DNA from: Schmidtea polychroa | Lineage: Eukaryota | Direction of reading: 5' to 3' | Length of the DNA stretch: 64,000 nt | NCBI GenBank assembly: GCA_044892525.1 | Contig: CM097885.1 | Location: forward strand, 28,706,001-28,770,000 | Shown here: piece after piece, positions 4,230-12,480 of the stretch | How positions within the stretch are numbered: the first letter of the stretch is position 1 | Layout: every line of letters starts with the position of its first letter | Translations under genes and position numbers: made by a program | Notes under the pieces: model-generated | The model's database searches: none | What the model was told of the DNA's origin: nothing | The model's input: the letters and a program-made list of their open reading frames with translations, nothing else

Positions 4230-6883
4230 CAGGGGTGGCAAAACTTTCAAGTCTTGCGGGCGACTTTTAACTAAATTAAATCTGGCGGTCTACCAGATAA
4301 ACTATTTTCAATTGTTACCTGTAGTTATTCTATTTATTCTATTTAAATACAAAACGAATTAGAAAAAAACTTATAATACTTTACTAGAACGTAAACATAT
4401 CTTAATATAATATTATTTACTGCTACTACTTGCACCTGATACGTGGCACTGCATCTTATCAGCAAGTTCTTCGTATTTCGGGCAATAGGAGCTTATGGCG
4501 ATTCGCAAGCATGATTCCAAATGATCATCTGTCAAACAAGATCGATGTTTTGTTTTAATGACATTCATTGAAGAAAAGGCTGATTCACAAAGATAGGTGG
4601 ATCCAAAAAATGCGGACATATATCCAACTACTCTCCGCAAAATTGGATATTTTTCTTCTGAAATAAGATTCCAAATTTTATCTTCGGTTGTAGCTCTTGA
4701 TTTTAAGTAAATGTCGCTTTTCAACGCTAATATCTCATCTTCTAAGCAAGCTGAATCTGAATCCAGAAATTCATTAATCTGAGTAGCGATCTCCTCTGTA
4801 TCAATAACATCATTAAACGGGAATGACATGAACATAGCAATATTTGCAATTTTAGATAAATCTGCGAAACGTGTGTTAAATTCATTTAAAAGGGTAGTAA
4901 TTTGATTTGTATATTTATCATTAAGAATTCCTGGCGCATTTTTGGATTCTTCTTCCATGTTTTTAAAATGTTTCAAATCACCCCGTTCTAGTTGACGCAC
5001 AAACAAGGACAGTTTCTCTTTAAACGTCTTTACTGTCGTTATCATGTCAAGAATTGATTTGTGTCTCCCCTGAAGCTGTAAATTTAATTTATTCAGGTGC
5101 TCTGTAATGTCGCAAAGAAAAGCAAGATTTATCAGCCAACTTTTATCCTCCAGTTCGGGATATAATTCTTCTCTTCCAGTTAAAAACTGTTTTATTCCGG
5201 GCAAAAGATCTCTAAATCGTTTTAAAAATGCTGCACGGCTAAGCCATCTTACATCCGTGTGTAACAATAATTCAGTATTTTCAATTTCACATTGTTCAAG
5301 CAAAGTTCGAAATTGACGTCGTTGTAGACTTCTTGCACGTATCGAATTTACTATTTTAAACGCAATATTCATTACATAGTTAGAGTTCAACACTTTGGAG
5401 CATAAGGTTTGCTGGTGGATAATGCAATGATACGAATGAAAACTGGGAATTTCTTCATCATTTTTGCAAAGTGTTACAAATCCGACATGTTTTCCGATCA
5501 TAGACGGAGCTCCATCCGTGGTAATTGATACCAACTTGTGAATCGGGAAATGGGTGCGACTTATAAAAGACTTGAATAAATTGTAAATATCTTGACCCCT
5601 TGTTTGTCCTTTCATTGGAAGAATAGTCAATAATTCTTCTCTGGTTGACATATCATCAAAAACCATTCGAATGAAGATGCATAGTTGCGCAGTATCAGTG
5701 AAATCTGTAGATTCATCAAATTGCAAAGAGAAAAAGCGGCATTTTCGAATATCTTGCCGCAAAATATCTTCCAAGTTTTTGCTAATGTCCACCATTCTTT
5801 GCGTGCTAGTATTGCGCGTCAATGACATATTGTTGATACAATCCATTATTTCGGATTTATTTTTAAAATCTTTGAATAACACCTTACCATCTTCAACAAA
5901 CGCCTGTTTCCATATTTCGCCATCTCCAAAAGGTTTTTTATGTTTCATCAAAATATTAACTACCTTGAATGATGCTAGGGTAGCTGTTTTTGATTTTGAG
6001 TTAAATTTCGTAAAAAAAGTTTGTTGTGCACCTAATTGAGACTTTAACTGTTTGACTTTGTCTTTTCGTACCTCGGAATGTAATGGAAAGTCAATTTCAT
6101 ACTGTTTGTGCACTGTTCGAAAATGTCGTTCAACGTTAGCTCTTTTAGGTAGTGCTACGTTTGAATTACAAATGAGACAAACACACTTATCTTTCATCAT
6201 TATGAAAAAAAATTCCTGTTCCCATTCAGTATTATAATGGTACGTTTTAGTTTTTTTGGCCGGTTGTGTCATTGGGGCTAAAACAAGAAAATAATAAAAG
6301 CTAAAATAAATTAAATATGAAAATTAATGTTAAACACACTTACATACTCAAAAATTAAAAATTTTAACTTTTATAAAGAATTTTTTTTAATAAAAAAATT
6401 TTGAAATTAATATTATAAGCAGGTATTATTCAATACTGAATACTTCAAGCTTTCAAATTTTTCTAACGAAAACAATTTGATTTCAAAATTGAAATAGACA
6501 AACACACGTTTGTTGTATTTTATTTTGGTTGTTTTTTATTTTTTTATTCCTTATCGAAGATTGTAGCGTCAATGTTTTGCGTTTATTTTATGGCCTACTT
6601 GTTCAAACACATGAAATTTATTCTGATTATTAGCTAACTGTATATATTTGAATTTCAAACTAAAAATTTACTACACTCTGAGTGTTATCTGACTAATATT
6701 ATGTTTCTTATTGGAATTTTTTTGTCATATGAATCGAAACTTATTTTAAATATGTTTATAAAGTTAGAAATTCAATAAATAAAAAACTGATTTTTATATG
6801 CAATTTTCCATAGTGCTAGCGGGCTACTTTCGATAGCTACGCGATCGACCAGTCGACCGCGGTCGACGCTTTTGCCAGCCCTG
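4230..6883 (-). mobile_element. Full-length hAT DNA transposon (SPIN/Charlie, GTF2IRD2-like clade), 2654 bp
   Basis: TIRs CAGGGGTGGCAAAA (4230) and reverse complement CAGGGCTGGCAAAA (6883), perfect 8-bp TSD ATATATAC, one intact ORF. Confidence 0.95.
4413..6272 (-). CDS. hAT transposase, 619 aa, uninterrupted
   Basis: N-terminal CVCLIC..RHFRTVH zinc finger, FDESTD, TTDGAPSM, HCIIH, DVRWLS, STYLCESAFS (catalytic D, D, E all present) and C-terminal dimerisation motif; candidate 66-nt 5'-UTR intron 6278-6343. Confidence 0.95.
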   Translation of the reverse strand: MTQPAKKTKTYHYNTEWEQEFFFIMMKDKCVCLICNSNVALPKRANVERHFRTVHKQYEIDFPLHSEVRKDKVKQLKSQLGAQQTFFTKFNSKSKTATLASFKVVNILMKHKKPFGDGEIWKQAFVEDGKVLFKDFKNKSEIMDCINNMSLTRNTSTQRMVDISKNLEDILRQDIRKCRFFSLQFDESTDFTDTAQLCIFIRMVFDDMSTREELLTILPMKGQTRGQDIYNLFKSFISRTHFPIHKLVSITTDGAPSMIGKHVGFVTLCKNDEEIPSFHSYHCIIHQQTLCSKVLNSNYVMNIAFKIVNSIRARSLQRRQFRTLLEQCEIENTELLLHTDVRWLSRAAFLKRFRDLLPGIKQFLTGREELYPELEDKSWLINLAFLCDITEHLNKLNLQLQGRHKSILDMITTVKTFKEKLSLFVRQLERGDLKHFKNMEEESKNAPGILNDKYTNQITTLLNEFNTRFADLSKIANIAMFMSFPFNDVIDTEEIATQINEFLDSDSACLEDEILALKSDIYLKSRATTEDKIWNLISEEKYPILRRVVGYMSAFFGSTYLCESAFSSMNVIKTKHRSCLTDDHLESCLRIAISSYCPKYEELADKMQCHVSGASSSSK

Positions 6884-9400: not shown

Positions 9401-9667
9401 TAAGACTACAGATTTTTTTCTGACAAAACATTAAATAAAAATACCTATTTAAATAGTAACCCATTAATAAAACATTTTTATTACAACTAAATCATTAACC
9501 ATTAAAAAGAAATTAGTAAATAAATTTAAATTACAAAGAATAAGATATTACTTAAAATAAAACAAAAGCAACAAAGAAACAATTTATTCACAAAAACAGG
9601 TTGATATATCTGAAAAGAATAAATTAGATAATATAACAAATTATATCAAAATATTCTAATTTCTAAT

Positions 9668-9728
9668 TTAATCAGCAAAATGATAGAATCATAAATCATA
9701 GAGATTCCTACTAAGTTTCATCACTGAT
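9668..9728 (-). ncRNA. SNORD79: Box C/D snoRNA, SNORD79 (U79)-like
   Basis: Box C GUGAUGA (9724-9718), guide AGUAGGAAUCUC antisense to LSU rRNA GAGAUUCC(U/C)ACU, D' AUGA, C'-like AUGAUU, box D CUGA (9675-9672), terminal complementarity AAUCAG/CUGAUU. Confidence 0.8.
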
Positions 9729-9871
9729 TGAACAAAAAATTAATTAAATAAATACATACCTTATAACTTCAGTTAACTTCAAGTTTGAATATTGATTCTA
9801 ATAAGTAAATATCTAAATCAATAATCTATTAATTTAATATTAACTAAATTTAAAATTTAAATTATTGATAA

Positions 9872-9935
9872 AGCTCAGTAAAAAACCGACTCATCAAATG
9901 CCTTTATGACTGGGGCGGTAAATGGTCATCATTAT
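9872..9935 (-). ncRNA. SNORD31: Box C/D snoRNA, SNORD31/snR67-like, copy 1
   Basis: Box C AUGAUGA (9932-9926), guide UACCGCCCCAGU antisense to LSU rRNA P-loop ACUGGGGCGGUA, D'-like CAUA, C' UGAUGA, box D CUGA (9878-9875). Confidence 0.85.
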
Positions 9936-10072
9936 AAAAATTTTAGTAACAATCGACTAAATACTCACCATATAAATCTTGAATGTTTGAATTCATATAA
10001 CAATCTGCGGATTAAAACCTAAGACATATATTAAATTTAAAATTAAATATATTAAAAATTTGTATTTTTAAT

Positions 10073-10133
10073 GGCTCAGTAAAACCGACTCATCAAATTC
10101 CTTTATGACTGGGGCGGTAAAAGGTCATCAGAA
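10073..10133 (-). ncRNA. SNORD31: Box C/D snoRNA, SNORD31/snR67-like, copy 2
   Basis: Box C UGAUGA (10130-10125), identical guide UACCGCCCCAGU, CAUA, C' UGAUGA, box D CUGA (10079-10076). Confidence 0.85.
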
Positions 10134-10729
10134 AGTTTTTATTAAAAAATTATAATTAATAAACTCACCAATTTCAAACAGAATTGACTAATCCTTTGAA
10201 ATTAAAAAAATGATTTTATTCTGTTATAACATGAGTATTCAAATCAGATAGCACTTCTAAAAATTATTCTTAAAATATATAACTAAAAAATAATTAAATA
10301 TTACTTAGATATAATTTAGAATTGATTTTTTAAAGCTATATCCTAAATGTTTAAAGACTTATTAAAACAACTTAATTTTTCACATACATTTATCATTTAA
10401 AATTATTTTTCAAACATTAAATATGAACTTTAATTATACTTGATTATAATTACACATTCTTTACACATTTTTACCAAATTTGAAAATATTTATATTTTAA
10501 TCGCGTATAAAAACATTTAAAATTTTCACTTGATTTAATTCAAAAAAATGAGTATTAAAATTTCAAAATTGTTTTATTTGTTTAATATCGTTGAATGAAT
10601 AAATATTAAATTTATCACTCTTTTAATTATTTAACATGGTGACCACAAACTTATTTCATTCAAGTATTCAGAAATTCGTTACAATGTTTTCCCTTTGACA
10701 CCCATCTTACAAATATAAATATAACTAAA

Positions 10730-10948: not shown

Positions 10949-12315
10949 CCCTTTGACACTCATAAGCGTTGCCGGCATTTTTATCGCTTGAAATATTAAT
11001 CAATCGACAGATTTTAGTCCATTAGTGAGTATTATTTTCAAAAAATAATTTATTCTTTATTTTTTAGACACTACCTGGGGTGGTACATAAATACACCACT
11101 AAGCGATAATATGCAAAATATCCAATCAGTCAATTATATGATAAAGTGAATAACACTGACGTTGAGCATTCAGACAGAGGTGAACATCACATGAACTGCA
11201 TTTAATGTTGCTGCGGCAATCATGTCTTCGGGTGCTGCAGTATGTGCATCGCTTTCTGTCTTCTGTGAATACTGGTAAATGTTGTGGTGTAGGACAAGCA
11301 GCATTACTCGGTCGAATTTTCTTTGAAAGAGGATTGGTGGATGTCGCTCTCTGATGACTACTGTAACGACCAGTGAGAGATAGCGCCACAGATCTGCGAA
11401 AGTCAAGAGCCTTCATTAGGTTGCCCTCATTTAGTTTCTTGAAAATGACATAGGAATTACACACACCAATATCCAGTAGGTCAAAGAAAATGCGTAAGTA
11501 GAACTTCACTTTTGACCTTTAAGTAAAAAAATCAAAACAAACAATGTATGTAGAGTTATAATGTGCACAGAGGCTGTAAATTTTTGCTTACCTTCGGTCG
11601 ATTCCATATGCCTCTTTTCGTTGATCTGCAATGTCAACACCTCCCATAATTGAATTATACGTCGAAACCATTTTTGGAACAGTTTTAGGCATTTTACCAG
11701 CCGTACCTCTTCGTCTTCTCATAACGTTCGTGGTTTCAAAAGGAGTCTCATAATTGGATAGAATAGTGACAGGACGTTTGTCCATCCACTTTATTGATGA
11801 GATACTGCCATTAGTGCTAACGTAAGAGTAAATATCACCCTCTTTCATACGCTTGTTAGCACGTACATCATCTGGCAAGTGTTTTCGTGATGTTCTGATA
11901 GTACCAATAGCTTGAACACCGTTTTCACGTAAATAGAAAAACAGCTCTACCGAGGAGAAGAAATTATCCATTGCCAGGATACAGTTTGTGTTGTGAAGAC
12001 TCTTTGCCAAATGCATTACCACACTTCCACCTAGACCAAATTGGCGACCTTCATTATAAACTTTGCCTTGATACATGTCAAGTTCATGAACATATCCAGA
12101 GTGTGATGATGCTCGGAACCACATTTTGAATCCCCAGGGTATGGGTTTTCCTTTGACGTACTGTTTCATTGCACTTTTCCCAGTGAACTTAATCATGTGT
12201 TCATCAATTGACATTTCATTTTCCATTTCCATTGCAGCTTGAAACGCTTTGTTGAAATGGTTTATTAGTGGACGTACTTTGTACGCTCTGTCGTATTCCG
12301 GATTGTCTTTATGAT
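10949..12315 (-). mobile_element. 5'-truncated piggyBac transposon (PGBD2/3-like) with intact 3' terminus
   Basis: TTAA (10945-10948) + CCCTTTGAC terminus; transposase core and Cys-rich C-terminal domain; no matching 5' TIR found. Confidence 0.9.
11126..12315 (-). CDS. piggyBac transposase (N-terminally truncated), two exons 11592-12315 and 11126-11516
   Basis: SIDEHM, AMDNFF, GGVDIADQ (DDD triad); 75-nt intron 11517-11591 (GTAAGC..TTAAAG) whose removal gives DRRSKVKFYLRIFFDLLD; C-terminal CTYC..CSSCDVHLC..C..H. Confidence 0.85.
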
Positions 12316-12480
12316 ATATCGTCGTAACTTGCTTGTCCATTCAGAGGCAACAACTCAATAAGCTTCTCACGTACTCCAGAAGATGAAAAGTATTTGGCAA
12401 CTACGCAACGCAGTGATATATCAGTGACAACCACAGATTCATCAACAGGTAGCGATAAATAATTAGCAGAGGTAATATCT
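12316..12480 (-). mobile_element. hAT transposase remnant directly joined to the piggyBac fragment
   Basis: SLPVDESVVVTDISLRCVVAKYFSSSGVREKLIELLPLNGQASYDDI corresponds to the hAT DES-TD..REELLxxLPxKGQTxGxDI segment. Confidence 0.7.

Follow-up and report, generated by a model that had tools for sequence, protein, structure and literature searches.

Tandem intronic candidates for SNORD31-type P-loop guide snoRNAs carrying a CAUA D' box in Schmidtea polychroa

Two near-identical islands in neighbouring introns of this locus raise the question of whether a pair of box C/D snoRNAs, each with a D' box reading CAUA, could direct ribose methylation of the ribosomal P-loop, and whether both copies would do so. 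We analysed the whole 64,000-nt stretch of DNA (hereafter the window), which comes from a 781-Mb genome with 30% GC. The islands are very probably two functional intron-encoded box C/D snoRNA paralogues, orthologous to U31/SNORD31, snR67, DdR13/CD13 and ceN63, and this putative functional assignment is well supported by the sequence evidence set out below.

Both copies lie on the minus strand (Table 1). Read 5' to 3', each consists of box C UGAUGA, a 5-nt spacer, the 12-mer UACCGCCCCAGU, CAUA and an 8-nt loop, AAGGNAUU, followed by a perfect internal UGAUGA, a U-rich spacer beginning with GUCGG, and CUGA. Box C and box D are thus present in both, together with a perfect internal C' box and a degenerate D' box, CAUA; and, where a guide calls for at least 10 nt of rRNA complementarity abutting D or D', 12 pairs are found directly ahead of CAUA. 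Within the pre-box-D spacer of copy A, GUCGGUUU is kept across copies, while the remainder of the spacer differs in length. The Rfam stem pairs are flagged as non-canonical in the terminal stem, and minimum-free-energy folding gives no clear end-to-end stem. An additional element, YGGU, is located 2-5 nt past the C' box (9887-9890 in copy A and 10086-10089 in copy B, minus strand) and is able to pair with the guide's 5'-terminal ACCG. All four copies of this genome have it, and so do all the orthologues seen, be they human, nematode, Dictyostelium, plant-like or environmental.

Table 1. Positions of the predicted snoRNAs, their parts and the host-gene features in the window, with the paralogous loci given in genome coordinates (a slash marks a predicted splice junction).
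Feature	Position	Strand	Remarks
snoRNA copy A, box C to box D	9932-9875	-	58 nt including the purine ahead of UGAUGA; limits set at the boxes
Copy A box C AUGAUGA	9932-9926	-	
Copy A guide UACCGCCCCAGU	9920-9909	-	antisense to own 28S 2904-2915
Copy A D' box CAUA	9908-9905	-	same columns as CUGA in SNORD31 and CAUA in ceN63 (consensus sequences)
Copy A C' box UGAUGA	9896-9891	-	
Copy A spacer ahead of box D, GUCGGUUUUUUA	9879-9890	-	
Copy A box D CUGA	9878-9875	-	
snoRNA copy B, box C to box D	10131-10076	-	56 nt
Copy B box C (C)UGAUGA	10131-10125	-	core intact; preceding base is C, not a purine
Copy B guide UACCGCCCCAGU	10119-10108	-	
Copy B D' box CAUA	10107-10104	-	
Copy B C' box UGAUGA	10095-10090	-	
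Copy B box D CUGA	10079-10076	-	
Predicted intron with copy B	10005-10168	-	164 nt, G/GUGAGU ... CAG/; box D 71 nt ahead of the 3' splice site
Predicted micro-exon (exon 2) between the snoRNA introns	9969-10004	-	36 nt; unique in the genome
Predicted intron with copy A	9798-9968	-	171 nt, G/GUGAGU ... UAG/; box D 77 nt ahead of the 3' splice site
Predicted micro-exon (exon 3)	9760-9797	-	38 nt
Third intron, with a different box C/D snoRNA inside	9610-9759	-	
Paralogous locus L009	G000:C1:235507250-235510298		one P-loop snoRNA
Paralogous locus L010	G000:C1:235458003-235461051		one P-loop snoRNA

The target of the guide was sought in the rRNA of the organism itself. A complete rDNA unit could be annotated, comprising 18S, 5.8S and a 3695-nt 28S (Rfam LSU, 2943 bits). 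The 15-mer GACUGGGGCGGUACA occurs in about 874 genomic copies, in arrays with a period of about 13 kb, and a sampled copy falls inside a eukaryotic LSU rRNA (Rfam, 1994 bits). The guide UACCGCCCCAGU forms 12 of 12 Watson-Crick pairs with 28S positions 2904-2915, the sole such site across 18S, 5.8S and 28S, and the C and A of CAUA could lengthen the duplex to 14 bp. An earlier sequence-only reading of this locus had called the guide antisense to the P-loop, making that claim depend on the native 28S containing ACUGGGGCGGUA; the native 28S does contain it, and the antisense match is complete.

Counted back five nucleotides from CAUA, the guide reaches a C whose partner in the duplex is the second G of GGGG, at position 2908 of the Rfam-delimited 28S. 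Its equivalent in E. coli was checked on an annotated 23S rRNA of 2905 nt that runs one position ahead of standard numbering. This offset of +1 was read at two landmarks, GACGGAAAGACC in the A2058 region and GGGGAUAACAGGCU in the A2451 region, whose standard numbers we take to be A2058 and A2451, respectively. After correction, the four Gs correspond to E. coli 2250-2253 and the second of them to G2251, so that counting five nucleotides from CAUA does lead to the residue that the sequence-only reading had named. G2251 is the P-loop residue that pairs with C75 of the P-site tRNA. Since the fifth-nucleotide rule points to this second G and SNORD31 has the identical register, we infer that methylation would fall on it. 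The equivalences proposed for yeast Gm2619 and human Gm4166 likewise agree with the literature: snR67 directs modification of G2619, described as "Gm2251 in E. coli", and the orthologous P-loop site is methylated from bacteria to humans (PMC11121408), while a published table equates Dictyostelium Gm2952/CD13, yeast Gm2619/snR67, human Gm4166/U31 and Arabidopsis Gm2610/snoR35 (PMC8817022).

We also looked for a second guide by comparing the pre-box-D spacer of all three versions of the snoRNA (copies A and B and the paralogue described below) with 18S, 5.8S and 28S, and found no convincing target; the best spacer/rRNA duplexes are short, rich in G.U pairs and inconsistent between copies. Because this spacer has no convincing rRNA target, the RNA resembles the single-guide SNORD31 rather than snR67. 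The proposed SNORD31/snR67 type can be kept for the P-loop guide, with its register and target, and has to be given up for an snR67-like second guide.

The D' box, CAUA, had been considered unusual. At the aligned columns, however, consensus D' boxes read CUGA in SNORD31 and GlsR4, CuGc in DdR13, CUUA in snoU31b, AAUA in TtnuCD11 and CAUA in ceN63. Metagenome contigs were also scanned for box C plus the guide. The scan returned at least 120 stretches, mostly chance matches in GC-rich bacterial DNA, to which a snoRNA-like filter was applied (a later CUGA at the right distance, an intervening UGA word and a low-GC tail). Among the matches listed, 12 loci were snoRNA-like; the D' box was CUGA in nine of these and CAUA, CUUA and CCGA in one each. 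The CAUA case, on contig L024, is the sole other CAUA P-loop guide among the metagenome matches listed. The ceN63 consensus, with CAUA in the same columns, and L024 thus make CAUA a minority form that is already attested, not a new one.

Orthologues vary in their D' boxes (CUGC, AAUA, CUUA and CUGA), which indicates that the family tolerates drift in this box. C at position 1 and A at position 4 are the parts most often kept, and a U at position 3 is also found in plant snoU31b (CUUA) and Tetrahymena TtnuCD11 (AAUA). Reviews describe C'/D' boxes as less conserved and sometimes or often degenerate (PMC8162545, PMC8053127). The environmental contigs offered further observations. The region L024:2400-3082, which includes the CAUA guide, belongs to a very AT-rich contig and holds at least four box C/D-like units spaced approximately 150-250 nt apart. 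Two other environmental contigs, L031 (3104-3462) and L115, carry tandem pairs of the same P-loop guide; the members of the L031 pair lie 336 nt apart and differ in their D' boxes, CUGA and CUUA. From these tandem pairs and mixed D' boxes it follows that tandem duplication and D' drift recur in the P-loop guide family.

How a CAUA box could still support a C'/D' motif may be considered in terms of the box C/D kink-turn. In this fold A4 of box D would form the bulge-proximal sheared G.A pair and G3 the second sheared pair, while U2 would enter a U.U pair and C1 a Watson-Crick pair with the G of C'. CAUA keeps C1 and A4, and with U3 the second sheared pair would be replaced by A.U. In Kt-23, a kink-turn in which A.U replaces the second A.G, the structure still folds normally (PMC2790904). 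The Thermus thermophilus 30S Kt-23 carries A.U at the bulge-distal A.G position, and pairing of CAUA with UGAUGA would give the same substitution; Kt-23, however, is a ribosomal kink-turn and not a snoRNA C'/D' motif, and it is by inference that we extend the parallel to CAUA. By this analogy, an A.U pair in the CAUA C'/D' motif would be compatible with kink-turn folding.

The loss of the G of the second sheared pair nevertheless invites a different reading, in which the RNAs are real but the D' box is taken in another register (AUAA, for example) or alternative C'/D' structures form, so that a neighbouring G or two sites would be methylated. Degenerate C'/D' motifs have indeed been proposed to shift or multiply target selection (PMC8053127). 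We nonetheless hold such a shift to be highly improbable, given that guide and box align column for column with the CUGA of SNORD31 and GlsR4, that nine environmental orthologues use the same register, that A at position 4 and C at position 1 are retained, and that methylation falls on the orthologous site in organisms from bacteria to humans (PMC11121408). The second G of GGGG remains the preferred target.

Placement in a named family was less straightforward. At gathering scores, Rfam gave no match anywhere in the 64,000-nt window. Below threshold, copy A (over 9869-9940) scored 25.3 bits with DdR13, 24.4 with TtnuCD11, 24.0 with SNORD31 and 20.1 with ceN63, and copy B 24.1 bits with DdR13 and 22.6 with SNORD31; further sub-threshold matches were to snoU31b (17.0 bits) and GlsR4 (12.9 bits). 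The gathering scores are 40 bits for SNORD31 (RF00089) and 65 bits for ceN63 (RF01646), and the covariance search against SNORD31 accordingly failed to confirm the family by the curated standard in either copy. The best permissive matches are all P-loop guides (E from 4e-4 to 0.3 for a 96-nt stretch), and the guide with its following box aligns column for column with SNORD31, DdR13, TtnuCD11, ceN63, snoU31b and GlsR4. The sub-threshold scores together with this alignment therefore define the copies as orthologues by guide and architecture, even though they fail the curated cut-off. A sub-threshold result is expected for AT-rich snoRNAs of 55-60 nt.

Comparison with individual relatives places the copies between several of them. 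Human U31/SNORD31 has the same 12-nt guide UACCGCCCCAGU before its D' box, in the same register, with one functional guide; it too is intronic in a non-coding multi-snoRNA host gene, and its target is the P-loop G (Gm4166 in older numbering; PMC8817022). It differs in having CUGA as its D' box where the copies have CAUA, and its terminal stem pairs are unmatched in these copies, which score under 40 bits. In the consensus of C. elegans ceN63, CAUA likewise comes right after the guide in the matching columns; the loop beyond it is rich in A and U, the C' box is UGAUGA and the spacer includes GGUUU. On the other hand, the last nucleotide of its guide is G rather than U, CCGA stands at the consensus box D columns, and the score is 20.1 bits against the 65 needed. 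Yeast snR67 guides Gm2619, equivalent to E. coli Gm2251 (PMC11121408), but also Um2724, while the copies here have no convincing second target. Dictyostelium DdR13/CD13, Tetrahymena TtnuCD11, plant U31/snoU31b and SnoR35, and Giardia GlsR4 are orthologous P-loop guides and provide the top sub-threshold matches; their lengths and second spacers are different, and their genes occur in clusters instead of as one snoRNA per intron. In Arabidopsis, disrupted expression of U31a/b lowers methylation at the orthologous site (PMC8053127). A literature search found nothing on SNORD31 together with snR67, on ceN63 methylation data or on a Drosophila orthologue.

The two copies were then compared with each other. 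Between box C and box D, 53 of 55 aligned positions are identical and a single 2-nt indel separates the copies; local alignment of the snoRNA body gave z = 29.5, and none of 2000 shuffles was as good. On the 3' side of box D the intron sequences are still detectably related (z = 3.7, a value reached by 5 of 2000 shuffles), and no relatedness was detected between the 5' splice site and box C (z = 0.9, 2000 shuffles). Since z reaches 29.5 in the body against 0.9-3.7 in the flanks, we conclude that the duplication took in the snoRNA together with some of its intron, and that most of the neutral sequence has since decayed. The picture of two near-identical islands in neighbouring introns with diverged flanks is thus borne out, on the minus strand. 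An intron-plus-exon duplication under selection had also been proposed. Of this, selection stands, the body having been kept while the flanks decayed, as does duplication of the snoRNA with its 3' intronic flank. The exon part was dropped because the exon alignments did not exceed shuffles: no homology was detected between the adjacent micro-exons (z = 1.5, 2000 shuffles), and neither exon 2 against exon 3 nor exon 1 against exon 2 rose above that background. Homology between the copies can be demonstrated for the snoRNA and the 3' intronic flank alone. The pattern supports probable purifying selection on both copies.

Box C and the P-loop guide come together at only four places in the genome; two are the copies described above, the other two belong to a paralogous host gene, and the D' box of each is CAUA. 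At the spacing of copies A and B, box C plus guide is found only in these two places of the 781-Mb genome, and the reversed-pattern control returned 0. The two further places have a 4-nt spacer and lie on the same chromosome, approximately 207 Mb away, as a pair in inverted orientation, 49 kb apart, with identical snoRNAs; this inverted pair may be a genuine segmental duplication or a duplicate created in assembly. The paralogous host gene has a similar first exon; its P-loop snoRNA is intronic, with a CAUA D' box and with box D 63 nt ahead of the 3' splice site, and a second snoRNA type occupies the next intron, as at this locus. The description of the copies as tandem duplicates is right for the pair in its two neighbouring introns, but the pair does not stand alone and belongs to a family of four copies. 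When the three distinct versions (A, B and the paralogue) are compared, the body varies at only three places, namely one spacer position, the base that follows AAGG in the loop (A, C or G) and the 3' portion of the pre-box-D spacer, whereas the flanks are unalignable between loci.

A CUGA-type P-loop guide is absent from the assembly, with no occurrence of CCGCCCCAGUCUGA in the genome. Four loose-pattern matches to CCGCCCCANNCUGA were considered as guides and rejected: three are copies of a repeat element and one is an unrelated site, and none of the four has a box C. The repeat-element copies (L140, L141 and L142, on G000 C2 and C3) share a terminus with CCGCCCCAAGCUGA, and their likeness to guide and box D arises by chance.

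The intronic setting was examined using GT-AG splice sites read off the sequence alone. Intron-encoded animal snoRNAs occur one per intron, roughly 60-80 nt ahead of the 3' splice site. With the predicted splice sites, the same arrangement is seen here: there is one snoRNA per intron, and box D lies 71 and 77 nt ahead of the 3' splice site at this locus and 63 nt ahead in the paralogue. The host is a typical small multi-snoRNA gene and is apparently non-coding. Its other box C/D snoRNA (9672-9724, minus strand) runs from GUGAUGA to CUGA with a terminal AAUCAG/CUGAUU stem. This neighbour contains the element AGUAGGAAUCUC, a perfect 12-nt complement to 28S positions 2602-2613 of the same organism, and its guide is followed by UAUGAU, again non-canonical relative to CUGA; the paralogous locus L009 carries this snoRNA in the corresponding intron. 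Just upstream of the host gene lies a piggyBac-type transposase fragment (Pfam DDE_Tnp_1_7, 168 bits) at 11588-12340 on the minus strand, and ends resembling TTAA-CCCTTTGACAC occur twice, near 10690 and 10940, which suggests nested or partial elements by the presumed host promoter. Elsewhere in the window, a 619-aa open reading frame (4413-6272, minus strand) matches a Spin-doc zinc finger with 32 bits and a hAT dimerisation domain with 19.8 bits, the latter under cut-off.

These observations bear on the most sceptical reading, that the islands are chance likenesses or dead relics, an AT-rich intron having brought together box-like words and an rDNA-antisense fragment that yields no RNA product. 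It could appeal to the Rfam families, none of which reaches its gathering score, and to the sequencing runs guessed to be RNA, which contain almost none of the stretch (judged from contigs only). Yet chance or decay is hard to reconcile with four copies at three loci in which 50 or more nucleotides are nearly invariant amid unalignable flanks, with a reversed-pattern control of zero, with best Rfam matches that are all orthologous guides, and with a similar distance to the predicted 3' splice site across three introns. We consider this reading extremely improbable and retain that of genuine snoRNA genes.

In sequencing runs X1-X4 the stretch is found in one contig with flat, DNA-like depth, and these runs are possibly the assembly's own source. 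Run X6, from another sample under the same species label, yielded a 155-nt contig that matches exon 1 and, separately, exon 2 plus its borders, with 51 other letters replacing 10019-10166 (148 nt, copy B included). Exons 1 and 2 are unique in the assembly, and the X6 contig is therefore a variant of this locus. Copy B may be absent in some individuals, or the contig may be an assembly artefact.

Could copy B, then, be dispensable? On this alternative only some of the four copies work, with copy B or the whole tandem pair redundant and heading to loss, and P-loop methylation would fall to copy A and/or the paralogous locus. Besides the X6 contig, in which copy B goes with the replaced segment, copy B has CUGAUGA with no purine before box C and the shortest pre-box-D spacer. 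The same copy is nevertheless intact in every box, in the guide and in the D'-C' loop, and its differing from copy A at only 2 of 55 positions despite decayed flanks argues for continued selection; the X6 contig, for its part, may be artefactual. We judge partial activity to be unlikely, although it is the rival that we would take most seriously, and favour two functional copies at this locus.

Under the favoured explanation, each copy would be freed from an intron once the host transcript, small and apparently non-coding, had been spliced, and its ends would be trimmed back to boxes C and D. The trimmed RNA would assemble with the core box C/D proteins, including fibrillarin, which at the C'/D' motif would methylate the 2'-OH of the second G of GGGG at 28S position 2908; the spacer ahead of box D would not serve as a guide. 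The two copies would go back to a local (cis) duplication that included the intron around the snoRNA, and purifying selection would have kept the four snoRNA bodies nearly identical as their flanks decayed. Tandem intragenic cis-duplication has been described as a main route to snoRNA paralogues (PMC2653536).

The locus adds an ordinary member to a snoRNA family already known, and both the cis-duplication and the degenerate box are of kinds seen before. Its main value lies in annotation, since few rRNA ribose methylations are universally conserved and the guide for one of them is now located. That Rfam gathering thresholds find nothing here indicates that curated cut-offs miss short, AT-rich snoRNAs, and the four CAUA copies provide a data point on D' drift while the guide stays under selection. 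More speculatively, and with rather long odds, the all-CAUA genome could serve as a natural test case, in which either a D' box lacking the guanine of the second sheared pair fully supports methylation of this universally conserved P-loop nucleotide or a weakened C'/D' motif makes that methylation partial. Pairing of the YGGU that follows C' with the ACCG of the guide might make methylation tunable. By analogy with Kt-23, the boxes with U at position 3 in AT-rich lineages (CAUA, AAUA and CUUA) would represent convergent drift tolerated by a Kt-23-like kink-turn.
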